Shown piece by piece: positions 1,171-51,679 of a DNA stretch of 64,000 bases. Location: contig NC_090371.1 in NCBI RefSeq assembly GCF_036365525.1, forward strand, positions 36,253,387 through 36,317,386, given 5' to 3'. Each line of letters starts with the position of its first letter. Position 1 is the stretch's first letter. This DNA is from Heterodontus francisci. Taxonomy: Eukaryota. The notes beneath the pieces are model-generated. The model did not search any database and was not told where the DNA came from. It saw only the letters and a program-made list of their open reading frames with translations. The position numbers and the translations under genes are program-made.

Positions 1171-3519
1171 CAAATAAAATGCTCAATAGAGAACTGGGCG
1201 ATGTAACACTAACTCTGTGACAGACAGTGTACAATTAGGCCGTTGTCTGTATTTAACTAGAACCGACAGGAATGAAGATAATCAGAACACTTGATCAATT
1301 CTCTTTTTTTGGACGCGTTATGTGGTTGCATTTTGTTTCCTCTAACGTGTCTGCGAGAATATGTTGAAAATGCAATCTTGTAATACAACTGCTGATGTGT
1401 TCAATATTTATGAAGTAATATTGGGAAAATTGCATTACATCGCTGTTTTCTCTCGAGTGTTCCGGGATGGTGCCTAGAGCTCCCACCTGGTCTTATATCA
1501 AGGCCCCATTCATTTGTGTACACAGAATTGTGTTCTCCAGAAAATCTGGATGTTATCTGCAGCTTGATGTATTTTTTTAGACAGCAAGAGCTTACAATAA
1601 TTTCAAATTACTGAAGAACGGCAACTGAGCTGTTCTTGCTAACATGTTTGCCTTGCTAAGATTCAGTCTTCTTCACTTACTGAAGGACGTTCTCGGGTAA
1701 GAAAGAAAACTTCCTTATGAGCAGATAGACCAGTTTTCACTGGAATTTATTCACCAATTAAACCTACTGCAAGTAACGTGTGCGGTCGTATCTTTGCAGA
1801 ATAACTGTTTAATGAATTAATGAAAGGCTTAGTGTACATACGGAGTACTGTCATACTGGTATACAATGCCAAATATCCGCGCAGAATCGTATATTCTGTT
1901 TCAGTAAGCCACGTGAATATATCAGATATTTTAATTAAGTACCTTTTTAGTACTCAAGGTATAAAATGAACAGCCTTACACAAGACTTGAGATAAAGGGT
2001 TTTCTGTCCCAGTTGTTCACTGGTGGAATACATTCCTAGATGAAGCATGTAAGGCTGATCATTGACGTTGAACACATATCCTATTGAGAGGTTTATACAA
2101 GCACAGATAGGGGATATTCTGTGGAACAATAGTTTGGAGCTTAGTATATATGGTGGCGAGGATAGCGATTAGTCCAATGTAATTTAGAATGTCAGATTAG
2201 TAAAATATTCTGCAATTTTGTTGTTTTAAATCAATAGTTCAAAAAGCTTAGAATAAGAAGCAGTTAGGTCGATATACAATCTAATCTAATCTATCGTGGA
2301 CCCTACTCCACTCATAATTTCCTCCGTAGACGTCCTGCGACTTTTTAACCTAACCTCTAAAAGCAGCTTCCGAACTATTGATGCGTCCCCAATGTCCATT
2401 ATTCAACCCTAGCTGACCCCTTTCAGATGAACACACCTTGTTCTCAATGGAAGAGGGATCTTTGCACTCCTTGGAGTATTTGATTATACCTGGCTATACT
2501 GAAACAATCAAATACACGAACGCTGAATTGGGAATGAATGCATCCAGTTCAGTAGAACACCTTCAGGAAGTATATCTGCCACAGAAATTCATTTGACTCA
2601 ATACCTAATGATTCCTTTCCAATGCATTGAGTTATCCAATAGACTGACGACCTCACTGGACCTTCACCCTCTGTCTTACTAAAGGTTTCTTAGCTCTGAG
2701 TTCACAGTCTCTGTTTATGTCCTCAGAGTGCGAGTTGAACAAACTGCTAACAACCTGCTATGTTTGTATTATTCTTGCAGATCATTTGAAACATTTGAAA
2801 CATTTGGAACTTGCCCCCTCGGTGATGTTTCCACTAAAAGAACACAGTCCAGATTTCTGATTGCCCCCATCTCTATTTGCTATGAGTTTCTGAGCCCTAA
2901 ATACTTGCTCGTTCTTTGAATGGTCTCCAAGCACCTGACTTCTGTCAGAATAATGTAATATAAGCAGAACATGCTGGAAATGCTCAGCAGGTCAGGCAGC
3001 ATTTGGAGAGATGCTGAATATTTCCAGCACTTTCTGTTTCTATTTCAGATTTCCAGCATCCACAGTATTTTGCCTTTGTGTTAGAATAAAGTCTTCGGAT
3101 TTTCAACCAACTAACTCCCAGATACATTCTGGCGATTGATGAACGCAAGGATGCCTCTGAAGGACAGTTTATTATTTTTTATTTATGCCCGAAACTCGAA
3201 GAGACTGAAGGGCCTATGAAAGGAATGGCCATCGTGGGATCAATAACCTTTATCTCGTGTTCTGCAATGTTCCTTAACGCCAAATGCCTAACCCGTTGCA
3301 ACGTGGAATAAAAACAAGAAATGTTGGAAATACTCAGCAGGTCTGGCAGCATCTGTGGAGAGAGAAGCAGAGTTAACGTTTCAGGTCAGTGACCCTTCAT
3401 CAGGTTAACTCTGCTTCTCTCTTCACAGATGTTGCCAGATCTGCTGAGTATTTCCAGCATTTCTTGTTTTTATTTCAGAATTCCAGCATCTGCAGTATTT
3501 TGCTTTTGTTTTACTGTTG

Positions 3520-4812
3520 CAACAAAGAATAAAGAACAGTACAACACAGGAACAGGCCATTCGGCCCTCCAAGCCTGCAGATCTTGATGCCAGCCTAAAC
3601 TAAAACCTTCTGCACTTCCGGGAACATATCACTCGATTCCCATCCTATTCATGTATTTGTCAGGATGCTTCTTAAATGTCGCTATCGTACCTGCTTCCAC
3701 CACCTCCCCCGGCAGCAAGTTCCAGGCATTCACCACCCTCTGTGTAAAGAATTTGCCTCGCACGTCCCTTCTAAACTTTGCCCCTCTCACCTTAAACCTA
3801 TGTCCCCTAGTAACTGACTCTTCCACCCTGGGAAAAAGCTTCTGACTATCCACTCTGTCCATGCCACTCATAACTTTGTAAACCTCTATCATGTCTTTTT
3901 TTTTCCAAAATATACTTTATTCATAAAAATCTGTAAAAATTACATTCCCAAACAGTTTAAAACAGCATCAAGTCAAAAAATACAAACAGTGCAAAGGTGA
4001 TCAGTTTCCTTCTATACAGTCATGAGTTGCCTCACAACTCTTCCATTTCATTGTCGTGCCATATACATTTTTACATTTACAGCACACAAAATTTTCCCGA
4101 TACAGTTCGAGGGGTTTCCCCTGGATCCAGCCCCTCAATTCAGCTTGGTGGGGGGACCTTACATTGTGGACTTTCCCCATTGAGCCTTTGCTGCGGCTGC
4201 CCCAGGCTTTAGTGCGTCCCTCAGCACGTAGTCCTGGACCTTGGAATGTCTGCAACATTCGGTCGTGGACAACTCTTTGCGCTGGAAGACCAGCAAGTTT
4301 CGGGCAGACCAAAGGATGTCTTTCACCGAATTGATAGTCCTCCAGCAGAAGTTGATGTTTGTCTTGGTGTGCGTCCCTGGGAACAGCCCGTAGAGCACAG
4401 ACTCCTGTCTAACAGAGCTGCTTGGGATGAACCTCGACAAAAACCACTGCATCTCTTTCCACACCTGCTTTGCAAAGACACATTCCAGGAGGAGGTGGGC
4501 AACCGTCTCTTCCCCACCACAGCCACCGCGGGGGCATTGTGCGGAGGGGGCGTGCAGGAAGGATCTGACGGGGAGGGCCCTTCTCACCACCAGCCAAGCT
4601 ACATCTTGGTGCTTGTTTGAAAGTTCTGGTGATGAGGCATTCCGCCAAATGACTTTGGCGATCTGCTCGGGGAACCATCTGATAGGCATGTCGCCCCTCC
4701 ACCTCCGTCGTTCCAGTGAAAACAATCCGAGTTTATCCAACCTCTCCTCATAGCTAATGCCCTCCAGCCCAGGCAACATCCTGGTAAACCTCTTCTGTAC
4801 CCTCTCCACTGC
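3520..4812 (-). mobile_element. CR1 3' fragment, split by a Tx1/L1 insertion
   Basis: ERVQKRFTRMLPG...LERRRWRGDM (4812-4687) continues as MIEVYKVMSGMDRVDSQKLFPR (3892-3629), followed by a CR1 tail. Confidence 0.85.
3896..4686 (-). mobile_element. 5'-truncated Tx1/L1-clade LINE (C-terminal CCHC zinc-finger region)
   Basis: CPRGGCGGEETVAHLLLEC motif, AATAAA and poly(A) on the minus strand, flanked by CATGTC direct repeats (3890-3895 and 4687-4692). Confidence 0.8.
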
Positions 4813-4929
4813 CAAGATGTTGCCTGGAACTGTTAAATGTAGAAGACTAACATTTTGCACCATTGATCAGATTCTTGTTCTAGGAGTACCTTTGGAGCAT
4901 ATAGCCTGTTCTCCAGATTTTAGCTTGTC

Positions 4930-14600: not shown

Positions 14601-17567
14601 GAGAGACAATAGGTAAGCGCCTGGAGGTGGTCAGTGGTCAGTTATAATAATAATTGATAGTTAATAGTGGCTGTTTCAGGAGCTAGTGCCAGCATTAACA
14701 CACTGACTTTCATGACCTCTTCCTACTCAGAAATTTCTGTGATTCTATTGTGCCCTGGATATATTTCCACCCGCTGTGGACGCTGTAAAACCTGAGATCA
14801 GTTTGTCGAAATATCTAAGACCAATACCTGATTATAGATTCTTCCAATTTTCTGGGGCTACTGAAAGAGGTTTTCAATTAATGTATTAATCATAGTAAGA
14901 TGTAGCTAGCATGATAAGTCCAAGGGTAAAAAGGACACTTAAGTGACAAATGTAATTAAAATGGTTTAGATTTGATTGTTATATTTGTTCAACTACAATT
15001 AAATTCCCTACAGTTTAGAAGGTTGCAGAGTGATCTAATTGAGTTCTTTACATAGGGATCCATAGAATCATAGAATGGTTACGACACAGAGGAGGCCATT
15101 CAGCCCATTGTGCCCATGCCAGCTCTCTGTAAGAGCTAGCTAGTCATTTCCTCTGATGGGATAATCCAGAACAAAAATGTGTAATCTTAAAATTAAAGAT
15201 AAGCAATTTAGGAGCAAAAATCAGGAAACACCTTTTCATACAAAGGTTATGAAAATCTGGAATTCACTCCATCAAAGAGCTGGAAATGCTGGGTCTGTTG
15301 AAATTTTCAAGACAATGATCAAAGTACTTTTGTAAGGTCAGTGTGTCAAGGGATATGGAGCAAAGGCGAGTAAATAGAGTTGAGGTACAGATCAACCATA
15401 ATCTAATTGAATGGCAGACAGGCTCAAGAGGCTGAATGGCCTATTCCTGTTCCCGTATTCCTAAAATTACTAAAGAAATTAAAATAAAAGCAAAATACTG
15501 CAGATGCTGGAAATCTGAAATAAAAACAGAAAGTGCTGGAAATACTCAGCAGGTCAGGAAGCATCTGTGGAGAGAAAAGCAGAGTTAACGTTTCAGGTTT
15601 GTGACCTTTCATCAGAACCGTAATGTTAACTCTGCTTCTAATGTTTTAGGTTCCATTTTCTCACATAACAGTCACTGTAATTCAAAAGTGTGATTAATTG
15701 TATAGATCACGTTGAAATGTCCTGAAGTAATAATGTGCTCTTTAAACATAAATATATTTTTCCATCTTGGAGGTGGTAGCCACTTTGAAAAGTCTGGCAT
15801 CTGATGAGCTGATATCTGGCTTGAAAGGCCAAATATTGCTTATTGCAAAAATGATTACTTCATTGACATGTTGAAATCAACTTTGACACAATTTTCCACC
15901 TTAGATACATGAGTGGTCTCACTCGATGGGTTATTTCAACCCTGGGGCATGCATCTTGTTCAGAATAGCTCATCCATGGCACAGTAGGAGCTCAATTTAA
16001 ACAGACTGTCCCTAGTGGCTAAGGACGACACTGAGGTTTAAACAATAACAGCCACGACCTCTCTATAGTCACCTAACATATTTACTCGAGTTAGTGTTAT
16101 GTAATGTTTTACACAGGCAGTAATACATTATGGTGATTTTTTTTGGTTGACTGCTCATTTTTACAAATAGTCTCATGTTAATATAAATCAGACTTTTTGG
16201 TGAACTGTCAAACTTTGGCTTTACAATTACTATCCTTAATTCAGTAAAATATCTATTTAGGATTGAGCACAGAAACGTCCGAATAATTATATTCAGCAAG
16301 TGTTGAATAATTGAATGCAGCATTTTAATTAGATATTCACCTGGTTTCTTGAGGCAACAGAAGATTTATTAAACGTTGCCCTCTTGTGCCTGTTTTCCAA
16401 ATTCACTCCTATTTCCACATTAAACTCTATGCAAAGTGCATTGGGTTTTTAAGGTTAGCATATCGGCATATTTTTTGGTGATGAGTAATGTTACTTTTTG
16501 ATCATGATAAATTCTAAATAATTTTTGTTTGTCTTTTTCATTCATTTTTCCACATCCATTTTCAGTTATAGTTGGTCCCATTTTCTCGAAATGACTTGCT
16601 ATCTTGATATGAAATTGACAGAAAACATTCTGAAGGGTGTTGTGTAGTTTCCAGCATTGTTTTACAATATTTTGATCACTCGCTTTAATGAAGGAGCCAA
16701 TCAATGTGCCAACATTCCCCAGAAAGCGAGTTTAGAAACAGGGAAACCCTGCTAAAGAGCTTAGAAAATTTTACTGGATCAAAATTTTGTTAAATGTTTT
16801 ATTACTCTTCTTCCTGCGTAAACCTTAAACTACCCTTTTACTGGAGTATTGAATGTAATTCTTCACTTAGTATGTCAATTGAATGAAATGCTACCACGCT
16901 TCATAGTAAAGGAATCATTTATGTAAAGAACTTTTCCCAAAGAACCCATTGAGGGCATGAAAGCAGAACTAGCTAATGTGAACCGGCAAATTAGGGTAAG
17001 TGATAGGTCAATAGGCAGACATTTAATAGGATATTTCAGAATACACAGAATAGATACATTTCCACGAGAAAGAAAAATTCCAAGGGTGGGACCATCTGTG
17101 GTTAACTAAAACAGTTAAAGACAGTATCAAACTTAAAGAAAAATCCTATATTTGCGCTAAGATGGGAGGCAGGTCAGAAGATTGGACAGATTATAAAAAA
17201 ACAGCAAAGAATGACTATTGATTGATAAGGAAGGTAAAATTAGAGTACGAGAGAAAGCTAGCTAGAAATATAAAGACAGATAGTATGAGTTTCTATAGAT
17301 ATTTTTAAAAAGAAAAGAGGTAACAAAGTGAGCATTGGTTCTATAGAAAATGAGTCTGGGGAATTAATAATAGATAATAAGAAGATGGCAGATGAATTGA
17401 ACAGATATTTTGCATCTGTCTTCACTATTGAGGATACAAGTAACATCCCATTAGTAGCTGTAAGTCAGGAAATGGAAGGGAGGGAGGAATTCAAGAAAAT
17501 TACAATCACCAGGGAAGTGGTACTGAACAAATTGTTGGAGTTGCGGGCTGACAAGTCCCCGGGTCCT

Positions 17568-20500
17568 TTTTTTTTTATTCATTCATGGGATGTGGGCGTC
17601 ACTGGCTATGCCAGCATTTATTGCTCATCCCTAATTGCCCTTGAGAAGGTGGTGGTGAGCTGCCTTCTTGAACTGCTGCAGTCCATGTGAGGTAGGTACA
17701 CCCACAGTGCTGTTAGGAAGGGAGTTCCAGGATTTTGACCCAACGACAGTGAAGGAACGGCGATATAGTTCCAAGTCAGGATGGTGTGTGACTTGGACGG
17801 GAACTTGCAGGTGGTGATGTTCCCATGCATCTGCTGCTCTTGTCCTTCGAGGTGGTAGAGGTCGCGGGTTTGGAAGGTGCTGTCGAAGGAGCCTTGGTAC
17901 ATTGCTGCAGTGCATCTTGTAGATGGTACACACTGCTGCCACTGTGCGTCGGTGGTGGAGGGAGTGAATGTTTGTAGATGGGGTGCCAATCAAGCGAGAT
18001 GCTTTGTTCTGGATGGTATCGAGCATCTTGAATGTTGTTGAAGCTGCACCCATCCAGGCAAGTGGAGAGTATTCCATCACACTCCTGACTTGTGCCTTGT
18101 CGATGGTGGACAGGCTTTGGGGAGTCAGGAGGTGAGTTACTTGCCACAGGATTCCTAGCCTCTGACCTGCTCTTGTAGCCACGGTATTTATATGACTACT
18201 CCAGTTCAGTTTCTGGTCAATGGTAGCCCCTAGGATGTTGATAGTGGGGGATTCAGCGATGGTAATGCCATTGAAAGTCAAGGGGAGATGATTAGATTCT
18301 CTCTTGTTGGAGGTGGTCATTGCCTGGCACTTGTGCGGCACAAATGTTACTTGCCACCTATCAGCCCAAGCCTGGATATTCTCTAGGTCTTGCTGCATTT
18401 CTACATGGACTGCTTCAGTATTTGAGGAGTAGCGAATGGTGCTGAACATTGTGCAATCATCAGCGAACATCCCCACTTCTGACATTATGATTGAAGGAAG
18501 GTCATTGATGAAGCAGCTGAAGATGGTTGGGCCTAGGACACTACCCTGAGGAACTCCTGCAGTGATGTCCTGGAGCTCAGATGATTGACCTCCAACAACT
18601 ACAGTCATCTTCCTTTGCGCTAGGTATGACTCCAACCAACAGAGAGTTTTCCCCCTGATTCCCATTGACCTCAGTTTTGCTGGGGCCCCTTGGTGCCATA
18701 CTTGGTCAAATGCTGCCTGGATGTCTAGTGCAGTCACTCTCACCTCACCTCTTGAGTTCAGTTCTTTTGTCCATGTTTGAACCAAGACTGTAATGAGGTC
18801 AGGAGCTGAGTGGCCCTGGCGGAACCCAAACTGAGCATCACTGAGCAGGTTATTGTTAAGCAAGTGCCGCTTGATAGCACTGTCGATGACACCTTCCATC
18901 ACTTTACTGATGATTGAGAGTAGACTGATGGGGCGGTAATTGGCCGTGTTGGACTTGTCCTGCTTTTTGTATACAGGACATACCTGGGCAATTTCCACAT
19001 TGCAGGGTAGATGCCAGTGTTGTCGCTGTACTGGAACAGCTTGGCTAGGGGCGCAGCAAGTTCTGGAGCACAGGTCTTCAGTACTATTGCTAGAATATTG
19101 TCAGGACCCATAGCCTTTGCAGTATCCAGTGCCTTCAGTCGTTTCTTGATATCACGTGGAGTGAATCGAATTGGCTGAAGTCCAGCATCTGTGATGCTGG
19201 GGACTTCAGAAGGGGGCTGAGATGAATCATCAACTCGGCACTTCTGGCTGAAGATTGTTGCAAATGCTTCTGCCTTATCTTTCGCACTAATTTTCTGGGC
19301 TCCCCCATCATTGAGGATGGGGATATTTGTGGAGCCACCTCCTCCAGTTAGTTGTTTAATTGTCCACCACCATTCACGACTGGATGTGGCAGGACTGCAG
19401 AGCTTAGATCTGATCCGTTGGTTATGGGATCGCTTAGCTCTGTCGATTGCATGCTGCTTATGCAGTTTGGCACACAGATAGTCCTGGGTTGTACCTTCAC
19501 TGGGTTGACACCTCATTTTGAGGTATGCCTGGTGCTGCTCCTGGCATGCCCTCCTGCATTCTTCACTGAACCAGGGTTGGTCTCCTGGCTTGATGGTAAT
19601 GGTCGAGTGGGGAATATGCCAGGCCATGAGGTTACAGATTGTGGTTGAGTACAATTCTGCTGCTGCTGATGGCCCACAGCGCCTCATGGATGCCCAATTT
19701 TGCATTGCTAGATCTGTTCGTAATCTATCCCATTTAGCACAGTGATAGTGCCACACAACACGATGGACGGTATCCTCAATGTGAAGGCGGGACTTCGTTT
19801 CCACAAGGACTATGCGGTGGTCACTCCTACCAATACAGTCATGGACAGAAGCATCTGCGGCAGGCAGATTGGTGAGGACAAGGTCAAGTATGTTTTTCCC
19901 TCGTGTTGGTTCCCCCACCACCTGCCGCAGACCCAGTCTAGCAGCTACGTCCTTTATTACTTGGCCAGCTCGGTCAGTAGCGGTGCTACTGAGATACTCT
20001 TGGTGATGGACATTGAAGTCCCTCACCCAGAGTACATTTTGTGCCCTTGCCACCCTCAGTGCATCCTCCAAGTGGTGTTCAACATGGAGGAGTACTGACT
20101 CATCAGCTGAGGGAGGGCGGTAGGTGGTAATCAGTAGGAGGTTACCTTGCCCATGTTTGACCTGATGCCATGAGACTTCATGGGGTCCGGAGTCGATGTT
20201 GAGGACTCCCAGGGCAACTCCCTCCCTCCTGTAGACCACTGTCCCGCCACCTTTACTGGGTCTGTCCTGCCGGTGGGACAGAACATACCCAGGGATAGTG
20301 ATTGCAGTGTCTGGGACATTGTCTGTCAGGTACGATTCCGTGAGTATGACTATGTCAGGCTGTTGCTTGACTAGTCTGTGGGACAGCTCTCCCAACTTTG
20401 GCACAAGCCTCCAGATGTTAGTGAGGAGGACTTTGCAGGGTCGACAGGGCTGGGTTTGCCGTTGTCGTTTCCAGTGCCTAGGTCGATGCCGGGTGGTCCA

Positions 20501-20851
20501 TCCAGTTTCATTCCTTTTCATTGACTTCATAGAGGTTATGTACAACTGAGTGGCTTGCTAGGCCATTTCAGAGGGCATGTAAGAGTTAACCACATTGCTG
20601 TGGGTCTGGAGTCACATGTAGGCCAGACCAGGTAAGGACAGCAGATTTCCTTCCCTGAAGGACATTAGTGAACTAGATGGGTTTTTACAACAATGGTTTC
20701 ATGGCCATCATTAGACTAGCTTTTAATTCCAGATTTATTAATTAAATTCAAATTCCACCTTCTGCTGTGGTGGGATTCTGACCCCTGTCTCCAGATCAAT
20801 ACCTGGGTCTCTGGGTTACTGGTCCAGTGATAATACCACTACGCCACCGCC
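17568..20851 (-). mobile_element. Full-length single-ORF APE-RT LINE (CR1/L2 group, Zenon-like) with a tRNA-derived 5' head
   Basis: APE (TNIWRL, ILTES, DFNVH, SDH) and RT (ALDIQAAFDQVWH, GVPQGSVLGP, FADD) in 20545-17631 with one 1-bp frameshift near 18993. Short 3' UTR, (TGAA)n plus poly(A), TCCT on both flanks. A box at 20836-20846, B-box-like at 20773-20783. Confidence 0.9.
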
Positions 20852-21372
20852 TCCTGATGGACTTCATCCTCGGGTGTTAAAAGAAGTGGCTAGTGAGATA
20901 GTTGATGCATTAGTTTTAATTTTCCAAAATTCTCTAGATTCGGGGAAGGTTCCATTAGATTGGAAAATAGCAAGTGTTACTCCTTTATTCAAAAAGGGAG
21001 GGAGACAGAAAGCAGGAAACTACAGGCCAGTTAGCTTAACATCTGTCTTAGGGAAAATGTTAGAAGCTATTATCAAAGATGTTAAAGCAGGGCATTTAGA
21101 AAAATGCAAGGTAATCAGGCAGAGTCAACATGGTTTTGCGAAAGAGAAATCATGTTTAACCAATTTATTGGAGATCTTTGAGGGAGTTACATGTGCTGTG
21201 GATAAAGGGGATGTCTTGTACTTAGGTTTCCAAAAGGCATTTGATAAGGTGCCACATCAAAGGTTATTGCAGAAAATAAAAGCTCAGGGTGTATGTGGTA
21301 ACATATTGGCATGGATAGAAGATTGGCAGCTAACAGGAAACAGAGAGTAGGCATATAAACGGGTCATTTTTT

Positions 21373-21724
21373 TAGATTAGATTAGAGATACAGCACTGAA
21401 ACAGGCCCTTCGGCCCACCGAGTCTGTGCCGAACATCAACCACCCATTTAGACTAATCCTACACTAATCCCATATTCCCACCAAACATCCCCACCTGTCC
21501 CTATATTTCCCTACCACCTACCTATACTAGTGACAATTTATAATGGCCAATTTACCTATCAACCTGCAAGTCTTTTGGCTTGTGGGAGGAAACCGGAGCA
21601 CCCGGAGAAAACCCACGCAGACACAGGGAGAACTTGCAAACTCCACACAGGCAGTACCCGGAATCGAACCCGGGTCCCTGGAGCTGTGAGGCTGCAGCGC
21701 TAACCACTGCGCCACTGTGCCGCC
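21373..21724 (-). mobile_element. HE1-type V-SINE
   Basis: tRNA head ggcggcacagtggc, V-domain gtgggtttt...ccggtttcctcccac, CR1-like tail gggccgaagggcctgtttcagtgctgtatctc. Other copies at 32365-32690 (-), 39320-39672 (+), 43320-43610 (-), 44915-45271 (-). Confidence 0.85.
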
Positions 21725-22042: not shown

Positions 22043-24937
22043 TCATTCTCCTTTATCCATATACCTATCCAAAAGCCTTTTGAAAGTCCCTAAAGTTTCT
22101 GACTCAACAACTTCCCCGGGCAAGGCATTCCATGCCTCGACCACTCTCTGGGTAAAGAACCTTCCCCTGACATCCCCCTTATATCTCCCACCCTTCACCT
22201 TAAATTTATGACCCCTTGTAACGCTTTGCTCCACCCGGGGAAAAAGTTTCTGACTGTCTACCCTATCTATTCCCCTGATCATCTTATAAACCTCTATCAT
22301 GTCACCCCTCATCCTTCTCCTTTCTAATGAGAAGAGGCCTAGAATGTTCAGCCTTTCCTCGTAAGACTTATTCTCCATTCCAGGCAACATCCTGGTAAAT
22401 CTCCTCTGCACCCTCTCCAAGGCTTCCACATCCTTCCTAAAATGAGGCGACCAGAACTGCACACAGTACTCCAAATGAGGCCTTACCAAGGTCCTGTACA
22501 GCTGCATCATCACCTCACGGCTCTTAAATTCAATCCCTCTGCTAATGAACGCTAACACCCCATATGCCTTCTTCACAGCCCTATCCACTTGAGTTGCAAC
22601 TTTCAATGATCTATGCACATAGACCCCAAGGTCTCTCTGCTCCTCCACATGCCCAAGAACCCTACCGTTAACCCAGTATTTTGCATTCATGTTTGTCCTT
22701 CCAAAATGGACGACCTCACACTTTTCAGGGTTAAACTCCATCTGCCACTTTTCAGCCCAGCACTGCAACCTATCCAAGTCCCTTTGCAGACGACAATAGC
22801 CCTCCTCGGTATCCACAACTCCACCAACCTTTGTATCATCTGCAAATTTACTGACCCACCCTTCGACTTCCTCATCCAAGTCGTTAATAAAAATCACAAA
22901 CAGGAGAGGACCCAGAACTGATCCCTGCGGCACGCCACTGGTAACTGGGCTCCAGGCTGAGTATTTACCATCTAAGACCACTCTCTGCCTTCTATCAGTT
23001 AGCCAATTCTTAATCCAACTGGCCACATTCCCCACTATCCCATGCCTCCTGACTTTCTCCATAAGTCTACCATGGGGGACCTTATCAAATGCCTTACTAA
23101 AATCCATGTACACCACATCCACTGGTTTACCCTCATCCACTTGCTTGGTCACCTGCTCAAAGAATTCAATCAGGCTTGTGAGGCAAGACCTACCCCTCAC
23201 AAAACCGTGCTGACTGTCCCGAATCAAGCAGTGTCTTTCCAGATGCTCAGAAATCCTATCCCTCAGCACCTTTTCCATCAACTTGCCTACCACCGAAGTA
23301 AGACTAACTGGCCTGTAATTCCCAGGGTTGTTCCTATTCCCTTTCTTGAACAGGGGCACAACATTTGCCACCCTCCAATCACCTGGTACCACCCCCGTCA
23401 GCAGAGAAGATGAAAAGATCATTGCCAGCGGCTCTGCAATTTCATCCCTTGCTTCCCATAACATCCTTGGATATACCCCGTCAGGCCCGGGAGACTTGTC
23501 TATCTTCAAGTTATTCAAAAACCCCAACACGTCTTCCCTCCTAACGAGCACTTCCTCGAGCTTACCAGTCTGTTTCACACCGTCCTCTTCAGTAATACAC
23601 CCCTTCTCATTCGTAAATACCGAAGAGAAGTACTCATTCAAAACCTCACTTATCTCTTCCGGCTCAACACACAGTCTCCCGCTATTGTCCTTGACCGGAC
23701 CTACGGTCCCCCTAGTCATCCTCATATTTCTGACATACGCGTAAAAGGCCTTGGGGTTTTCTTTTATCCTACCCGCCAAGCATTTTTCATGCCCTCTCTT
23801 AGCTCTCCTAATCCCTTTCTTCAGATCCTTCCTGGCCATCTTGTATCCCTCCAGAGCTATGCCTGTGCCCTTTTTCCTCAACTTTATATACGCATCCTTC
23901 TTCTTCCTAACAAGACTCTCAACCTCTCTTGTCAACCACGGTTCCCTCACATGACCATCCCTTCCCTGTCTGACAGGGACATGCTTATCAATGGCCCCTA
24001 CTATCTGCTCCTTGAAAAAGTTCCACATTTCGACCGTGCCCTTCCCTGCCAGCATATGCTCCCAACTTATGCTCCTCAGTTCCTGCCTGACAGCATCATA
24101 TCTACCCTTCCCCCAATTGTAAACCTTGCCCTGTTGCACATACCTATCCCTCTCCATTACCACAGTGAATGCTACAGAATTGTGATCACTATCTCCAAAG
24201 TGCTCGCCCACCAACAGCTCTATCACTTGCCCTGGTTCATTACCTAGTACCAAATCCAATATTGCCTCCCCTCTGGTCGGGCAGTCTACATACTGCGTCA
24301 GAAAAGCTTCCTGGACATACTGCACAAACACTACCCCATCCAAACTATTCGATCTAAAGAGTTTCCAATCAATATTTGGGAAGTTGAAATCCCCCATAAT
24401 TACTACCCTGTGACTTCTGCTCCTTTCCAAAATCTGTTTCCCAATCTGCTCTTCCACCTCCCTGCTGCTATTGGGGGGCCTATAGAAAACTCCCATCAAG
24501 GTGACTGCTCCTTTCCTGTTCCTGACCTCAACCCACAGTGCCTCAGTCGGCAGATCCTCCTCGAAAATTCTTTCAGCAGTTGTTACACTATTTCTAACTA
24601 ACAATGCCACCCCCCCACCTCTTTTACCACCATTCCTAATCTTATGAAAACATCTATAACCAGGTACCTCCAAAAACCATTCCTCCCCCTCACCTATCCA
24701 CGTTTCAGTGATGGCCACAACATCGTAGTCCCAAGTGCCCATCCACGCCTTCAATTCACTCACCTTATTCCTGATGCTTCTTGCGTTGAAGTATACGCAC
24801 TTTAACCCTTCTCCGTGCCCATCTGTCCTCTGTGACAGTGCTACCTTCCCCAATACCTCACTACACTCTTTGTCTTTCTGAGTGGACCCACTGGTCCCTG
24901 GATTACAAGTCCGGTTCCCATCCCCCTCCCAAACTAG
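22043..24937 (-). CDS. CR1 ORF2 (APE endonuclease plus reverse transcriptase), open from the ORF1 stop, no N-terminal AUG
   Basis: YFNARS, ITETW, GDFN, SDHN, YMDFSKAFDK, GVPQGSVLGP, KFADD. No stops over 964 codons. Confidence 0.9.
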   Translation of the reverse strand, partial: LVWEGDGNRTCNPGTSGSTQKDKECSEVLGKVALSQRTDGHGEGLKCVYFNARSIRNKVSELKAWMGTWDYDVVAITETWIGEGEEWFLEVPGYRCFHKIRNGGKRGGGVALLVRNSVTTAERIFEEDLPTEALWVEVRNRKGAVTLMGVFYRPPNSSREVEEQIGKQILERSRSHRVVIMGDFNFPNIDWKLFRSNSLDGVVFVQYVQEAFLTQYVDCPTRGEAILDLVLGNEPGQVIELLVGEHFGDSDHNSVAFTVVMERDRYVQQGKVYNWGKGRYDAVRQELRSISWEHMLAGKGTVEMWNFFKEQIVGAIDKHVPVRQGRDGHVREPWLTREVESLVRKKKDAYIKLRKKGTGIALEGYKMARKDLKKGIRRAKRGHEKCLAGRIKENPKAFYAYVRNMRMTRGTVGPVKDNSGRLCVEPEEISEVLNEYFSSVFTNEKGCITEEDGVKQTGKLEEVLVRREDVLGFLNNLKIDKSPGPDGVYPRMLWEARDEIAEPLAMIFSSSLLTGVVPGDWRVANVVPLFKKGNRNNPGNYRPVSLTSVVGKLMEKVLRDRISEHLERHCLIRDSQHGFVRGRSCLTSLIEFFEQVTKQVDEGKPVDVVYMDFSKAFDKVPHGRLMEKVRRHGIVGNVASWIKNWLTDRRQRVVLDGKYSAWSPVTSGVPQGSVLGPLLFVIFINDLDEEVEGWVSKFADDTKVGGVVDTEEGYCRLQRDLDRLQCWAEKWQMEFNPEKCEVVHFGRTNMNAKYWVNGRVLGHVEEQRDLGVYVHRSLKVATQVDRAVKKAYGVLAFISRGIEFKSREVMMQLYRTLVRPHLEYCVQFWSPHFRKDVEALERVQRRFTRMLPGMENKSYEERLNILGLFSLERRRMRGDMIEVYKMIRGIDRVDSQKLFPRVEQSVTRGHKFKVKGGRYKGDVRGRFFTQRVVEAWNALPGEVVESETLGTFKRLLDRYMDKGE

Positions 24938-25854
24938 TTTAAACCCTCCCGAACAGTACTAGCAAACCTCCCTCCCAGGATATTGGTGCCCCTCTGGTTC
25001 AGATGCAGCCCGTCCTGTTTGAACAGGTCCCATCTTCCCCAGAATGCAGTCCAATTATCCAAGAACTGGAAGCCCTCCCTCCTACACCATTCCTGCAGCC
25101 ACGTGTTCAGCTGTGCTCTCTCCCTATTCCTAGCCTCACTATCACGTGGCGCCGGCAACAAACCAGAGATAACAACTCTGTCCGTCCGAGCTTTCAGCTT
25201 CCAGCCTAACTCCCTAAACTCACTTCTAACATCTGTGCCACCCTTCCTTCCTACGTCGTTGGTGCCAATGTGCACCACGACCTCTGGCTGCTCCCCCTCC
25301 CCTTTAAGGATCCTGAAGACGCGATCACAAACATCACGGACCCTGGCACCAGGGAGGCAACAAACCATCCGTGCGTCTCGCCTGCGCCCACAGAACCGCC
25401 TGTCCGTACTCCTCACCATCGAGTCCCTGATGACTAGTGCTCTCCCATTCTCCCTCCTTCCCTTCTGAGCCACAGTGCAGGACCCCGTGCCAGAGGCCCG
25501 GTCACTGCAGCCTGCCCCCGATAGGCCGTCCCCCCCAACAGTATCTAAAACTGTATACTTGTTGTTGAGGGGAACGACCACAGGAGATCCCTGCACTGAC
25601 CTCTTCCCACCTCTAACTGTTACCCAGCTGCCTTTGATTTGTGGAGTAACGACCTCCGTGTAGCTTCTATCTATCAACCCCTCAGCTTCCCGAATGATCC
25701 TCAGTTCATCCAGCTCCAGCTCCAATTCCCTAACACGGTCTGATAGGAGCTGGAGACGGATGCACTTCCAGCAGGTGAAGTCGGCAGGGTCACCGGAGGT
25801 TCCCCTCACCTCGAACATACTGCAGGAGGAGCAATACACTACACTGGCTGCCAT
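24934..25854 (-). CDS. CR1 ORF1 (Cys zinc finger, coiled coil, SGNH esterase-like domain), 306 aa
   Basis: CSSC...CWKC, VRELELELDEL, (R)DSM, HIGTND, DGLHLN. The GDS glycine is Arg in this copy. Confidence 0.9.
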   Translation of the reverse strand: MAASVVYCSSCSMFEVRGTSGDPADFTCWKCIRLQLLSDRVRELELELDELRIIREAEGLIDRSYTEVVTPQIKGSWVTVRGGKRSVQGSPVVVPLNNKYTVLDTVGGDGLSGAGCSDRASGTGSCTVAQKGRRENGRALVIRDSMVRSTDRRFCGRRRDARMVCCLPGARVRDVCDRVFRILKGEGEQPEVVVHIGTNDVGRKGGTDVRSEFRELGWKLKARTDRVVISGLLPAPRDSEARNRERAQLNTWLQEWCRREGFQFLDNWTAFWGRWDLFKQDGLHLNQRGTNILGGRFASTVREGLN

Positions 25855-32922: not shown

Positions 32923-35845
32923 CAGCGGTAGCAGTGAGAGTGCGAGCCAGGGGGCAGCTGGGAAGGTAAGTTTCACTATAAAATACTTACCTCCTGATTC
33001 GGCGGACACGGACACGGGGACTGCTGGGGAAGTGAACTTATATATTCGGGCAGTGGCTAAACCCGAAACACTACACCTGTAGTGTCTCCCACCCATCCTC
33101 CTCCTCTAACCAAAAAAAAAGGACTGTTGTGTGGAGGGTTTGGTAAGGGAAGGTTTCCCTTTATTTTTACTTAATCTCTGTGTCAATTTAGAGCCGAGGG
33201 GATGGAAGCTAGGGCAGTTGCATGCTCCTCTTGCAGGATGTGGGAGGTAAGGGTCACCACTGGTGTCCCTGCTGTGAGAAGTGCACCCAACTCCAGCTCC
33301 TCACAGACCGCGTTAGGGAACTGGAGCTGGCTGAACTTCGGATCATTCAGGCGGCTGAGGGGGTGATAGAGAGCAGTTATAGAGAGGTAGTGACACCTAA
33401 GTTACAGGATAGAGGTAGCTGGGTGACCGTCAGGGGAGGGAAAGGGAATAGGCGCACAGTGCAGGGATCCCCTGTGGCCATTCCCCTCAATAATAAGTAT
33501 ACTGTTTTGGATACGGTTGGGGGGGACGACCTACCAGGGGAAAGCTACAGCGGCCAGGTCTCTGGCACTGAGCCTGGCTCTGTGGCTCAGAAGGGAAGGG
33601 GGGAGAATAGGAGAGCGATAGTGATAGGAGATTCAATGGTTAGAGGAACAGACAGGAGATTCTGTGGTCGCGAACGAGACTCCCGGATGGTATGTTGCCT
33701 CCCGGGTACCAGGGTCAGGGATGTCTCGGATCGAGTCTACAGGATTCTTAAGGGGGAGGGGGAGCAGCCAGAAGTCGTGGTACACATCGGTACCAATGAC
33801 ATAGCTAGGAAAAGGGATGAGGACCTGAAAAGCGAATATAGGGAGTTAGGTTGAAGCTAAAAGGCAGGACGAGCAGGATAGTAATCTCAGGATTGATACC
33901 GGTGCCACGTGCTAGTGAGGCTAGAAACAGAGAGCGAGTGCAGCTGAACACGTGGCTACAGAGCTGGTGTAGGAGGGAGGGCTTCAGATATGTGGATCAT
34001 TGGGATACCTTCTGGGGAAGGTGGGACCTGTACAAGAAGGACGGGTTGCATCTGAACTGGAGGGGCACCAATATCCTGGGCGGGAGGTTTGCGAGAGCTC
34101 TTCAGGAGGGTTTAAACTAGTTTGGCAGGGGGATGGGAACCAGACCTACGGAACAGTGGATGGGGTAGCTGTTGAACAGGCAGATACAGAGTGCAGAGAG
34201 TCTGTGAGGAAGGTTAGACAGTTGACAGGGCAAAGTTGCAGCCAGTATGATGGGTTGAAGTGTGTCTATTTTAATGCAAGAAGTGTCAGGAATAAGGGCG
34301 ATGAACTTAGAGCATGGATCAGTACTTGGAGCTACGATGTTGTGGCCATTACGGAGACGTGGATATCACAGGGGCAGGAATGGATGTTGGATGTTCCGGA
34401 GTTTAGATGTTTCAAAAGGAATAGGGAGGGAGGTAAAAGAGGTGGGGGAGTGGCATTGCTAATCAGGGATAGTATCACAGCTGCAGAAAGGGAGGTCGTC
34501 GAGGAGGGTTTGTCTACTGAGTCATTATGGGTGGAAGTCAGATACAGGAAAGGAGCAGTCACTTTATTGGGAGTTTTCTATAGACCCCCCAATAGCAACA
34601 GAGACACGGAGGAACAAATTGGGAGGCAGATTTTGGAAAGGTGCAGAAGTAACAGGGTTGTTGTCATGGGTGACTTCAACTTCCCTAATATTGATTGGAA
34701 CCTCCTTAGTGCAAATAGTTTGGATGGAGCAGTTTTTGTCAGGTGTGTCCAGCATTGTTTCCTGACTCAATATGTAGATAGGCCGACTAGAGGGGAGGCT
34801 ATATTGGATTTGGTGCTTGGCAACGAACCAGGCCAGGTGACAGATCTCTCGGTGGGAGAGCATTTCGGTGATAGTGATCACAACTCCCTGACCTTTACAA
34901 TAGTCATGGACAGGGATAGGAGCAGACGGGATGGGAAAATATTTAATTGGGGGAGGGGGAATTACAATGCTATTAGGCAGGAACTGGGGAGCATAAACTG
35001 GGAACAGATGTTCTCAGGGAAATGCATGACAGAAATGTGGAGGTTGTTTAGGGAGCACTTGCTGCGACTGCTGGATAGGTTTGTCCCGATGAGGCAAGGA
35101 AGGGATGGTAGGAACCTTGGATGACAAGAGATGTGGAACAGCTAGTCAAGAGGAAGAAGGAAGCTTACTTAAGGTTGAGGAAGCAAGGATCAGACAGGGC
35201 TCTAGAGGGTTACAAGGTAGCCAGGAAGGAACTGAAGAATGAACTTAGGAGAGCTAGAAGGGGACATGAAAAAGTCTTGGCGAGTAGGATTAAGGAAAAT
35301 CCCAAGGCATTATTCACTTATGTGAGGAACAAGAGGATAGCCAGAGTGAGGGTAGGGCCGTTCAGGGATAGTGGAGGGAACTTGTGCCTGGAGTCGGAGG
35401 AGGTAGGGGAGGTCCTAAATGAATACTTTGCTTCAGTATTCACTAGTGAGAGGGACCTGGTCGTTTGTGAGGACAGCGTGAAACAGGCTGATATGCTCGA
35501 ACAGGATAGATAGAGTGGATAGCCAGAGACTTTTTCCCAGGGTGGAAAGGGCTATCACCAGGGGGCATAATTTTAAGGTGATTGGAGGAAGGTTTCGGGG
35601 AGATGTCAGAGGTAGGTTCTTTACACAGAGAGTGGTGGGTGCGTGGAATGCACTGCCAGCGGTGGTAGTAGAAGCAGATACATTAGGGACATTTAAGCGA
35701 CTCTTGGATAGGTACATGGATGATAGTAGTATGAAGGGTATGTAGGTAGTTTGATCCTGGAGTCGGTTAAAGGTTCGGCACAACATCGTGGTTCGAAGGG
35801 TCTGTACTGTGCTGTACTGTGCTGTACTGTTCTATGTTCTATGTT
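32923..35845 (+). mobile_element. Internally deleted CR1 (5' UTR, ORF1, APE, no RT, intact 3' end) inserted in an L2 3' fragment
   Basis: Disrupted ORF1 ~33200-34120, APE ~34120-35110. Jumps near 35505 from QADMLEQ to DRVDSQRLFP. (GTTCTAT)n tail. L2 sequence at 32690-32922 resumes after ctaa at ~35846. Confidence 0.85.
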
Positions 35846-37339: not shown

Positions 37340-38450
37340 ACTGAAAATTGTGGACAATGGCAGGGACAACAAACAGTGCATTGCGCTCCTCCATTTTTCT
37401 GAGGTATTGGTGGAGGAGGTCAGTAAGAGGAGGGACATCTATCTACCAGGAGGCAGGAAGATATCAAGGCAAGCTGCCCGGCATGTGTGGACAGAGGTGG
37501 CAAAGTGTATCACTGCCAGAAGCATCAGGATATGACTGCAAGATATGGAAAAACTCACTAACCTCACCAGGATAACTAAGGTAATTTTCCTTTTTCTTAT
37601 TCATTCATGGGATGTGAGTGGTGCTGGCAAGGCCAGGATTTATTGCCCATCCCTAATTGCCCTTGAGAAGGTGGTAGTGAGCAGCCTTCTCGAACCACTG
37701 CAATCCATCTGGTGCGGGTACACCTACAGTGCTGTTACAGAGGGAAATCCAGGATTTTGACCCCATGACAGTGAAGGAATGGCGATATAGTTCCAAGTCA
37801 GGATTCTGTGTGGCCTGGAGGGGAACTTGCGGATGGTGTAGTTCCCATGCATCAGCTGCCCTTGTCCTCCAAGGTGATAGAGGTCACAGGTTTGGAAGGT
37901 GCTGTCGAAGGAGCCTTGGTGAGTTGCTGCAATATAGATGGTACATGTTGCTGCCACTGTGCATCAGTGGTGAAGGGAGTGAATGTTTAAGGTGGTAAAT
38001 GGGGTGCTGATCAAGAAGGCAGCTTTGTCTTCTTTCTCTAATTATCTACTGAGCTTTGCACTACCTGTTGCCTAGCAGTCCCACTCTTCCCTCCCTCAAT
38101 TTCCAGCACACTCCTCCAATCACTACCGCACATTTCACTCTACCTCTTTCATCTCCTATTGCACCTGCTACTCTCCTCATTATTATGTTCTTCAGCTCAT
38201 ACACCTCTGTCGTCTTTCACACACCAGAGACACTATTCTACTCTGACATGAAGAGCGTCAAAACTTCTTGCTGCTCTAACGCAGGCACACTATTATTTCT
38301 TGCAGGAAAGGTGTACACAATAACAGGGAGCAGTCAGCCACAGGAGAAGGGCCAGGCTTCATCCATGTGCTGTCCTCACTTGAAGAGCAGGTTGTGGACA
38401 TGGACAGGGGACATCAGGGACATGTCATCTGGTGAGGCAGGAGGACATGT
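37340..38450 (+). pseudogene. Degenerate Myb/SANT-like gene of a PIF/Harbinger-type transposon
   Basis: FSEVLVEEVSKRRD...WTEVAKCI resembles Harbinger Myb-like proteins. Donor at 37581, acceptor near 38306. Stops present, and interrupted by a LINE 3' fragment (37590-38030). Confidence 0.5.
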
Positions 38451-39204
38451 CCTACAGGAATTTTAACCATCTTCCCCTCATTCCAATCTTTTAAATCTCA
38501 CTTTGCACATGATCCATGACAGATTGTAGAAGCAATCCTGATGGCAATAAATGCTAACGTTTCTCTCTTCATTCTATTTCACACCAGCATGGACTCGATG
38601 GGCTGAATGGCCTCCTTGTGCGCCGTAATGACTCTAAGCTTAATACAACCCTAAGACGATAACAGCACTGCAGAAGGGGATGCATCGCTCAACCTTACCC
38701 TTGCAGACATCAGTTCAGAAACTGGAACTGCGTAAAGTTCAGAGAGACCATCTACACATGGAGATGAACACAGCAAGAGTTTGCAGGGGCAAGGGCAGTG
38801 GCAAGGCTGACCGACGAAGTAGCTCACCCGAGGGAGAGCCTGCTGCAGAGGACCCACCATAAATAAGACCTGCACAGAACTTCTAAGTGCAGTGGTCTGC
38901 ATGCCAACGAGCTTGAGCACAGTGTTGAAGAGCATGGAGGACTCTAGCTCCAACTGTCTGCTGTCTTTGTTCACAGTATCGGCTCTTGCAATTGAATAGA
39001 GCGAGTGATCAGCTCTATGAGCATTGTAGGAGGACCCAAATGATACAACCTCTGGTGAGAATTCTGACTGCTGTCAAGTGCCTCCTAGGCACTATTCTTG
39101 GACAAAGCATCAGCGAGGCACATTCTGTCATCTCTTGGTGTGACAGCACACCATCTACTCACCAGTCACTCAGCAAGTGTCCATATTGGTTTAGTCAGTC
39201 AGCT

Positions 39205-39932
39205 TTTTTAAAATTCTTCCATGGGACATGGGCATTGGTGGCAGGCCAGCATTGTTATCCATCCCTAATTGCCCTTAAACTGATGCTAGGCCATTTCTGA
39301 GGGCAGTTAACAGTTTGCACAGGGCGGCACAGTGGCGCAGTGGTTAGCACTGCAGCCTCACAGCTCCAGCGACCCAGGTTCGGTTCTGGGTACTGCCTGT
39401 GCGGAGTTTGTAAATTCTCCCTGTGTCTGCGTGGGTTTCCGCCAGGTGCTCCGGTTTCCTCCCACAGCCAAAGACTTGTAGGTTGATAGGTAAATTGGTC
39501 ATTGTAAATTGCCCCTAGTGTAGGTAGGTGGTAGCAGAATTGGGGGAAGGTGGGGATGTGGTAGGGAATATGGGATTAATGTAGGATTAGTATAAATGGG
39601 TGGTTGATGGTCAGCACAGACTCGGTGGGCCGAAGGGCCTGTTTCAGTGCTGTATCTCTCTATGACTCTAAGAGTCCATGTGGGTCTGGAGTGCCAGACC
39701 AGGTAAGGACAGCAAATTTCCTTCAACTAAAGGGAACCAGATGGGTTTTTCCTGATAACCAATGATAGTTTCATGGCACCATTACTAAAACTAGCTTTCA
39801 ATTCCAGATTTTTATTAATTAAATTAACATTCCACCAGCTGCCATGGTGGGAATTGAACCGTGCCCTGGGGCATTAGCCTGAGCCTCTGGATTACTAGTG
39901 CAGTGACATTACCACCACGCCATCATCTCCCA
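39205..39932 (-). mobile_element. tRNA-Thr-headed SINE sharing head, middle and tail with the single-ORF LINE (HE1 copy nested at 39320-39672)
   Basis: A box at 39912-39922, B box GGTTCAATTCC at 39850-39860. The middle domain joins directly to the tail aagggcaattagggatgg. Confidence 0.8.
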
Positions 39933-50310: not shown

Positions 50311-51679
50311 TACAGTGGCATGGTGGTTATGTTACTGGACTAGTAATCCAAAAGCCCGGACTAATGATTTAGAGACATGAGTTCAAATCCCATCATGACA
50401 GTTGGGGAATTTAAATTCAGTTAATTAAATAAAATCTGAAATTAAAAGAACATTACCAGCAATGGTAAACATGAAACTACCAGATTGTTGTAAAAACAAA
50501 TCTGGTTCACGAATGTCCTTCAGGGAAGGAAATCTGCCATCATTACCCAGTCTGGACTACATATGACTCCAGACCCACAGCAATGTGGTTGACTCTTAAC
50601 TTCCCTCTGAAATGGCCTAGCAAGCTACTCAGTTGTAACATAACCATGACAAAAAGCAATAAGATGGAAACCAGACTGACTACCTGACATCGTCCGAGGC
50701 ACCGGACTTAATAAAGACACACCCAGCCCAGTCAACCCTTCAACATCCTCCTCACTAACATCTGGGGACTTTTGCCAAAATTGGGAGAGCTGTCCTACAG
50801 ACTAGTCAAGTAACAGACTGACATAGTCATACTCACAGAATCATATATTTCAGCCAACATCTCAGACTCTCTCATCATCATCCCTGGGTATGCCCTGTTC
50901 CACTGACAGATCAGACACACCAGAAGTGGTGGCACTGGCTATCCTGAACATTGACTTCAGACCCCATGAAGTCTCATACCATCAGGTCAAACATGGGCAA
51001 GGAAATCTCCTGCTGGTTATCACCTACGGCCCTCCTTCAGCTGATGAATCAGTACTCCTCCATGTTGAACACCACTTGGAAAAAACTCTGAGGATAGCAA
51101 GGGCACAGCAATTACTCTGGGTGGGAGATGTCAATATCCATTACCAGGAGGGACTCGAAGCACCACTACTGACCAAGCTGGCTGAGTCGTGAAGAACATA
51201 GCTGATGGACTAGTTTGCAGTCGGTAGTGAGAGTGCCAACACGAGCAAAAAACCTACTTGTTTTTGCGCTCACCAGTATGCCTGTCACAGATGCATCTGC
51301 CCATGACAGTATTGATAGGAGTGACCACCACACAGTCCTTGTGGAAATGAAGGCTCATCCTCACACTGAGGACACTACCACTGTCCTAAATGGGATAGAT
51401 TCAGAACAGATCTGGCAGCTCAAAACTGGGCATCAATGAAGCACTGTCGACCACCAGCAGCATTAGATTAGTTTCCAATCATAAGCTGTATCCTCATGGC
51501 CTGACATACCCCTCACTCTACCATTACCATCAAGCTAGGCGACCAAACCTGCTTCAATGAGAAGTCTAGAAGAGCATGCCAGGAGCAGCACCATGCATAC
51601 CCAAACATCAGTTGTCACCTTGGTGAAGCGACAACACAGGACTACTTGTCTGCTAGACATCAGAAAAAGCATGTGATAG
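50311..51679 (+). mobile_element. Second (degenerate, 5' half) copy of the tRNA-headed single-ORF LINE
   Basis: A box TGGCATGGTGG 50316-50326, anticodon arm CTGGA-CTAGTAA-TCCA, B box AGTTCAAATCC 50380-50390, same middle domain, then LLTNIWGLLPKLGEL. Confidence 0.85.

Follow-up and report, generated by a model that had tools for sequence, protein, structure and literature searches.

The 64,000-nucleotide window analyzed here, from the shark Heterodontus francisci (contig NC_090371.1, positions 36,253,387 to 36,317,386), carries on its minus strand a retrotransposed element of 3284 nt (17568-20851, as read directly from the sequence; hereafter copy A) that encodes an apurinic-type endonuclease (APE) and a reverse transcriptase (RT) in the manner of a long interspersed element (LINE) and begins with a tRNA-derived head like that of a short interspersed element (SINE). 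The head is inherited within an active APE+RT LINE lineage, the partner SINE of the family is the LINE minus its open reading frame (ORF), and the sense strand shows a depletion of T runs that is real, strand-specific and family-specific. Because a type-2 promoter stands precisely at the 5' end, SINEs have the same 5' terminus and the body is purged of T runs, the simplest reading, and the one we favor, is that RNA polymerase III (Pol III) would read through the whole element from the head (probability about 0.5). More tentatively, we propose that this is a natural, protein-coding, autonomous retrotransposon which may be transcribed in full by Pol III from a tRNA-type internal promoter, whose body has been shaped against terminators down to the choice of amino acids, and which is the direct parent of its own SINE.

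Copy A sits in a CR1-like RT gene. In translation both flanks of the insertion fuse into a single frame (..SPGP followed directly by DGLHPRVLKE..), TCCT stands on both sides, and contigs of paralogous, uninterrupted CR1 copies contain the joints of the empty site (17567->20873/20883); together these observations identify 17568-20851 as a single retrotransposed unit. The contigs are from public sequencing runs, which consist of assembled contigs; four runs were aligned to 17400-21000, and contig depth was not used for ranking the parts of the element. On the + strand the insertion starts with T9, that is, the A9 tail, and ends with the reverse complement of GGCGGTGGCGTAGTGG. Its parts are the following.

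17564-17567, + strand: target-site duplication, first copy, TCCT (direct reading, continuous host frame, empty-site joints)
17568-17576, minus strand: A9 tail (T9 on the + strand) with AATAAA just before it (direct reading)
17577-17643, minus strand: 3' tail with the last codons, the stop at 17631-17633 and the 3' untranslated region (UTR), common to the partner SINE (the joints of the SINE form enter at 17643)
17634-18992, minus strand: RT part of the ORF, second frame, with FADD (RVT_1 match, translation)
18985-18998, minus strand: lone frame break of copy A (overlap of two ORFs)
18992-20530, minus strand: N-terminal basic stretch and apurinic-type endonuclease part of the ORF (PF14529, PF03372)
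20531-20754, minus strand: the "middle" (5' UTR body), about 224 nt, common to the deletion-derived SINE as far as 20542-20544
20755-20851, minus strand: tRNA-derived head, about 97 nt, with A box, anticodon-like arm, expanded variable region and B-box remnant
20852-20855, + strand: target-site duplication, second copy, TCCT (direct reading)

The second TCCT could alternatively be a 5' microhomology with the GGGAGA start of the LINE family. The 3' UTR, between the stop codon and A9, is 54 nt long, and other copies of the family end in A-runs of 5-10 or in (AATA)n. Alignment and folding of the tail showed an outer stem, GGGATG/CATCCC, preserved in 6-8 of 8 copies, and no covariation in this stem was found in the alignment of these 8 copies. 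The TCCT repeats, the A9, four 5'-truncated copies in the window and a contig coverage rising 3'-ward are the hallmarks of insertion of a LINE.

The coding region of copy A is a single APE+RT ORF of 966 codons spread over two frames, with its first ATG at sense 322 and no ORF1. Pfam matched Exo_endo_phos_2 (PF14529, E=2.3e-10) and Exo_endo_phos (PF03372) in the 548-aa piece and RVT_1 (PF00078, E=6.6e-36) in the 455-aa piece, and the translation contains the catalytic motifs of the endonuclease (E, D-x-N, S-D-H) and the FADD of the RT (Y/FxDD type), so that both the apurinic-type endonuclease domain and the RT domain with FADD of an APE-type LINE are present. These domains, together with the TCCT on both sides and the continuous host frame, bear out the sequence-only reading, which had placed an APE+RT LINE inside TCCT flanks. 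It had also described an ORF of about 970 aa; the 966 codons agree with this, but the frame break near 18985-18998 leaves copy A without one uninterrupted ORF of that length and thus without intact coding capacity. At position 18991, 28-64% of the contig depth carries a one-letter length difference. The ratio of nonsynonymous to synonymous substitution rates (dN/dS) was 0.48 between copy A and a second copy (copy B, 332 codons) and 0.43 between copy A and a third (copy C, 928 codons), which indicates that the ORF of the family evolved under purifying selection and, accordingly, that much of the divergence arose in lineages with a selected ORF, that is, in active head-bearing masters. Homologous proteins are found in the sharks Heptranchias perlo, Heterodontus francisci and Pristiophorus japonicus. 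The ..ATGAATGAATAAA end and the reported link of shark tRNA-SINE tails to L2-2_CM (PMC5499810) are the only leads to the L2 clade.

At the 5' end, the head of copy A has an A box (TGGCGTAGTGG) that matches the consensus exactly and starts at sense +6, followed by the anticodon-like arm CTGGA-CCAGTAA-CCCAG, whose pairing is predicted in an alignment of three heads, and by a region between this arm and the T arm that is enlarged by about 25 nt. In copy A the B box is damaged (GGTCAGAATCC), whereas it is good in copy B and in one SINE of the window, S1 (GTTCAAATC, GTTCAATTC), and the exact A box is found in copy A and in another SINE, S2; the A and B boxes of a SINE2-type tRNA-derived head are thus present across the copies, with no one copy carrying both at the strict consensus. 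Of the parts in the earlier description of the head, A box and arm are present in copy A, and the B box is damaged there. Neither ARAGORN nor the Rfam tRNA model called a tRNA in the head, and the sole Rfam match was a chance-level hit to a long non-coding RNA, implying that the head is a SINE-type derivative of a tRNA, in agreement with the sequence-only reading, and not a tRNA gene. With 3284 nt and an APE+RT ORF of 966 codons, the element cannot be classed as a SINE, even though it may behave as one. The middle contains 8 ATGs upstream of the ORF, and AATAAA/ATTAAA hexamers at sense 113 and 125. In an alignment of LINE copies A and B with two SINEs, all 5' ends (GGGAGA..GGTGGCG) agreed to about 4 nt and the A box lay near +10; this common end implies that the RNA that was copied starts where SINE RNA starts.

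Other copies in the window show how the head is transmitted. BLAST of the element against the window found copy B at 50315-51673 (sense 5-1402, 75% identity) with the order of head, middle and ORF kept, and further pieces are listed below.

50311-51673, + strand: copy B, older and decayed, with head, middle and ORF (sense 5-1402); two private runs of four T
54711-55193, + strand: tail piece (sense 2773-3280) that probably belongs to copy B as its 3' end, past nested insertions
55506-57273, + strand: copy C, part 1 (sense 336-2118), without head, 5'-truncated at about the ORF start; three private runs of four T
59137-60288, + strand: copy C, part 2 (sense 2116-3277), past a foreign insertion at 57274-59136
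37591-38028, minus strand: 5'-truncated copy (sense 2845-3283; BLAST)
46082-46392, + strand: 5'-truncated copy (sense 2954-3264; BLAST)
47911-48256, minus strand: 5'-truncated copy (sense 2939-3284; BLAST)
568-646, + strand: tail fragment (sense 3204-3282; BLAST)

Copies A and B are about 22% apart, and the identity between them is 79.6% in head plus middle and 78.4% in the ORF. Since the two parts have diverged equally, the head was not acquired separately from the ORF. A SINE lying next to the LINE by chance was therefore rejected, on the grounds that copy A was inserted as one unit and that head and ORF diverged together; the sequence-only reading had drawn the same conclusion from the copy at 50311. 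Chimeras made by template switching would have independent origins and variable junctions, but copies A and B have common junctions and diverge in step. Copy C and the four short 3'-end copies present the usual truncation pattern of LINEs. Copy C itself begins at about sense 325-336, at the boundary between UTR and ORF, past about 310 nt of unrelated sequence (55194-55520, + strand), a start that may reflect either simple 5' truncation or a variant of the family that has no head.

The family is very abundant and occurs in several organisms: 49-78% of the 31-letter words of copy A were found in runs from at least 5 organisms, and a single DNA run gave 525,074 contigs on 17400-21000, with coverage rising toward the 3' end. 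Membership in an abundant single-ORF (APE+RT) LINE family of sharks is the best explanation of the element. Copy A differs from most contigs at about 165 positions (about 5%), and at about 46 of these a sense T stands in place of the family's C, which means that the family is if anything poorer in T than copy A. Given this distance of about 5%, the frame break and the damaged B box, copy A is probably not a source copy. In one RNA-labelled library contigs lay along the whole element, an observation that does not itself show transcription. Between 6 and 32% of the shark repeat words also turned up in libraries recorded as metatranscriptomes, some of them labelled coral or viral metagenome, implying that host-derived repeats are present in such data sets. 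Exact-pattern scans of viral contigs and of metagenome contigs gave no match, nor did a search of papers for sequence motifs of the body and the tail.

All four runs (4/4) contain the recurrent joint 17643->20542/20544. The roughly 2,900 nt missing at this joint correspond almost exactly to the ORF, and the last 76 nt directly follow head and middle. One deletion inside the LINE accounts for this SINE form, with no need for breakpoints to coincide. Two other SINEs of the window bear the same head.

39204-39932, minus strand: SINE with the LINE-type head and about 250 nt behind it, the LINE-type tail, and about 400 nt of other sequence between them
54502-54705, minus strand: SINE head (sense 4-198) followed by a different body

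The different bodies behind one head in these two SINEs suggest that modules are exchanged among SINE families.

No AAAA occurs on the + strand from 17568 to 20851, as the sequence-only reading had noted, and hence the sense strand of copy A has no run of four T (T4) in 3284 nt, while it has 14 A4+, 12 C4+ and 7 G4+ runs. How unusual this is depends on the null: a mononucleotide shuffle predicts 5.3 T4 runs (P(0)=0.005), a synonymous-codon or codon-order shuffle 2.4-2.6 (P(0)=0.05-0.06), and a dinucleotide shuffle 1.8 (P(0)=0.13-0.15). The last of these is a weak null here because TT itself is depleted, rho(TT) being 0.68 in copy A versus 1.18 in the intact neighboring LINE; rho(AA) is nearly the same in both (0.96 versus 0.97). 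Thus the count of T4 against shuffled sequence gives a modest signal (P from 0.005 to 0.15), whereas the wider depletion of T runs is strong. Runs of at least three T (T3+) number 7 in copy A versus 12.7 expected (P=0.02, dinucleotide shuffle), and 5 in its ORF versus 13.6 expected (P<0.0005, synonymous shuffle); under the same synonymous shuffle, A and G runs of the ORF were at expectation and C runs were slightly raised. Codon junctions with T on both sides number 12 versus 31.3 expected. Phe makes up 1.9% of residues versus 2.9-4.4% in controls, its codons TTT:TTC stand at 4:14 versus 26:15, 11:1 and 8:7 in controls, and TTR codons account for 10/88 (11%) of the Leu codons versus a quarter to half in controls. 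TG is over-represented (rho(TG) = 1.53). A depletion that reaches codon-pair context, synonymous choice and the choice of amino acids looks like selection rather than composition.

The controls came from the other LINEs of the window. One of them, at 22043-25854 (minus strand), is apparently intact, with two ORFs, 18 sense T4 runs and no AATAAA/ATTAAA; its ORF1 (306 aa) has a GDSL lipase/esterase domain and its ORF2 (936 aa) has APE and RT. In that ORF2 (22043-24853) T3+ runs (40 versus 41 expected), T4 runs (18 versus 14) and T-to-T codon junctions (43 versus 41) all agreed with the null, and all six control ORFs were at expectation in the T-run and junction tests, for which reason we rejected a general effect of LINEs or of strand composition. 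The density of T3+ runs is 2-6 per kb in pieces of the tRNA-headed family longer than 1 kb and 0-10.5 per kb in its short tail pieces, versus 13-22 per kb in the ORF2/RT pieces of other LINEs with similar T content. Each of the five T4 runs found in copies B and C occurs in one copy only, as post-insertion decay predicts and as the sequence-only reading had supposed of the older copies. The case for T-run depletion is thus made by the avoidance of adjacent Ts at several levels together with the controls. Internal AATAAA/ATTAAA hexamers show a weakly significant contrast: copy A has 4 versus 1.2 expected, and three control LINEs have 0 versus about 3.9 expected.

If the head works as a promoter, TFIIIC and TFIIIB would assemble on its A and B boxes, and Pol III would initiate at the same first nucleotides as in the SINE, traverse all 3.3 kb of T-run-free sequence and terminate at the first T4 of the flank. 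In copy A that first sense T4 is 69 nt into the flank, and the element therefore has the layout of a type-2 Pol III unit, with no sense T4+ between promoter and 3' end and a terminator downstream. Over a unit of 3.3 kb weak pause sites would add up, which may be why T3 and TT are depleted as well. The resulting RNA, with its L2-type tail recognized by the RT of the family, would be the template for target-primed reverse transcription. Translation of this uncapped RNA, inefficient and independent of scanning, might yield the protein, or the protein could be supplied in trans from RNA polymerase II (Pol II) read-through transcripts of other copies. Since the partner SINE is abundant, the RT evidently acts in trans on RNAs that bear the tail, and so a Pol III transcript need only serve as template. 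Lesser points that fit Pol III transcription are the tolerated internal AATAAA/ATTAAA, the small size, the single ORF, and the 8 upstream ATGs, which suit cap-dependent scanning poorly. Some Pol III transcripts of SINEs are polyadenylated (PMC8466645).

Several points weigh against this picture. None of the four heads in the window (0/4) has both boxes at the strict consensus, and the B box of copy A is damaged. The lack of T4 in copy A taken alone is of modest, marginal significance (P about 0.05-0.15 under the stricter nulls), and the sample of ORF-bearing copies is small, namely three. T3 is not a canonical terminator in vertebrates, so something other than termination could lie behind the scarcity of TT and T3. 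Uncapped RNA is poorly translated, and we know of no natural Pol III transcript of about 3.3 kb, nor of any that encodes protein. The polymerase, the start site, the chemistry of the 5' end and the route of translation are what we infer from sequence, and the run data are assembled contigs. Of the two proposals in the sequence-only reading, that selection acts against Pol III terminators is supported insofar as the sense strand has been kept free of T runs, unlike that of neighboring LINEs, with the transcription by Pol III itself staying conditional; the term "autonomous SINE" has the heritable head and the purge of T runs behind it, and is a well-motivated hypothesis, not a result.

The main competitor, less likely in our view, is a Pol II LINE that once captured a SINE-derived 5' UTR and lost its T runs for another cause. 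Head and middle would then owe their retention to a role as UTR, as a Pol II promoter that moves with the element, or as a TFIIIC-bound stretch of open chromatin, and the T runs might have been lost by avoidance of U-rich binding proteins or of U-rich downstream poly(A) elements, or by a bias of the RT lineage. Such an account agrees with the LINEs studied so far, which are taken as Pol II-transcribed (PMC5786205), with the AATAAA and A-run at the end of the element, and with a depletion that extends beyond T4 to TT and T3. The slightly raised C-runs could mean a bias from T to C, and with AATAAA/ATTAAA inside the element the loss of U-rich downstream elements could help a Pol II transcript. 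On the other hand, the head would be retained in progeny only if Pol II started where Pol III starts on the SINE, the over-representation of TG (rho 1.53) indicates that GU-rich elements were not avoided, and the other LINEs of this genome lack the TT depletion. Depletion at codon junctions, in synonymous choice and in Phe content looks like selection, not bias, and the 8 upstream ATGs are a poor match for cap-dependent scanning.

An order of events in which the SINE came first is possible, because the head and the first 200-250 nt recur on other SINE bodies of the window, but we regard it as unlikely. An old tRNA-SINE, possibly of the SacSINE1 or tRNA-Deu-L2 type, would have given the first ~308 nt to an L2-like LINE, which would then be SINE-like in its UTR only, and Pol III would make only short products. 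SINEs of the SacSINE1 type, with tRNA head, Deu body and L2-2_CM-like tail, are indeed of old origin and occur widely among cartilaginous fishes and in the coelacanth (PMC5499810). However, the deletion form 17643->20542/20544 removes almost exactly the ORF, so that one deletion in the LINE suffices, and the purge of T runs across the ORF would be left unexplained. Still less probable, in our view, is that the head-bearing copies are by-products, arisen by a template switch onto SINE RNA in the manner of U6/L1 or from an adjoining SINE, and that T4 is absent by chance and low T content. Template switching and RNA ligation do yield chimeras of small RNAs and LINEs (PMC5499810, PMC6789731), the same head stands on other SINE bodies here, and the dinucleotide null alone (P=0.13-0.15) would allow the absence of T4. 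Yet copies about 22% apart have identical junction positions and equally diverged heads and ORFs, the dN/dS of 0.43-0.48 speaks for an active lineage, copy A was inserted as one unit, and T3+ runs and T-to-T junctions lie far under their nulls in this family and not in the controls. Read-through by Pol III from the head is accordingly the reading that we prefer.

Three other features of the window belong to neighboring elements. At 21649-21721 (minus strand), within the host CR1-like element, a tRNA-like sequence scores 30 bits with the Rfam tRNA model, just over the gathering score; ARAGORN gives its anticodon as undetermined, and it is probably the head of another SINE. A 210-aa ORF at 33222-33854 (+ strand) has no Pfam match; it immediately precedes an APE ORF at 34000-35124 (+ strand) and may be the ORF1 of another LINE. 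At 4159-4863 (minus strand), a 234-aa ORF with a zf-RVT domain is a fragment of a further RT-bearing element.

The textbook division holds that LINEs are transcribed by Pol II and code for protein, and that SINEs are transcribed by Pol III and do not; it would be broken if the element is indeed transcribed by Pol III. Among natural Pol III units the element would then rank as the longest, and as the only protein-coding one known, and it would offer a testable route for the birth of a SINE, in which a full LINE gains a head and afterwards loses its ORF by deletion, explaining where the SINE "body" comes from. Even under Pol II, a family-specific purge of adjacent Ts that reaches Phe content and Leu codon choice needs explaining. 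In the literature searched, no LINE with a tRNA head or with Pol III transcription is described, though a deposited repeat consensus with the same structure is possible.

Among known systems, engineered mRNAs driven by Pol III, reportedly made by Gunnery and Mathews in 1995, could be translated, as artificial constructs and with low efficiency; they are a precedent for translation, with no natural mobile element shown as their counterpart. U6/L1-type chimeras arise anew each time, with variable junctions, and are not known to propagate. The present element resembles them in that a small RNA of the Pol III type is joined 5' of LINE sequence, and differs from them in that its junction is fixed and inherited and that it encodes its own enzymes. 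With tRNA-SINEs, including the T+ SINEs of PMC8466645, it has in common the 5' A and B boxes, the lack of internal T4, termination in the flank (predicted here) and AATAAA with an A-run; unlike them, as they are by definition short and non-coding, it is 3.3 kb long with an ORF of 966 codons. Pairs of a tRNA-SINE and a LINE are known from sharks, SacSINE1 with L2-2_CM and HE1 with HER1, and have only the tail in common (PMC5499810, PMC3747384). Like these pairs of L2/CR1-type LINEs and partner tRNA-SINEs (SacSINE1 or LmeSINE1 with L2-2_CM, HE1 with HER1), the family described here combines an APE+RT LINE with an abundant tRNA-headed SINE and a common 3' tail, but unlike the described shark pairs its LINE also has the head and body of the SINE at its 5' end. 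Kojima (2018; PMC5786205), who treats LINEs as Pol II units and SINEs as unable to encode protein, described SINE bodies derived from the 5' regions of LINEs, the contributors being the RTE and Vingi clades only. As in those bipartite-LINE SINEs, the body of the partner SINE corresponds here to the 5' region of the LINE and the tail to its 3' end, with an internal deletion between them. Kojima's model has the deletion precede the addition of the small-RNA head, whereas here the full-length coding LINE already bears the head.

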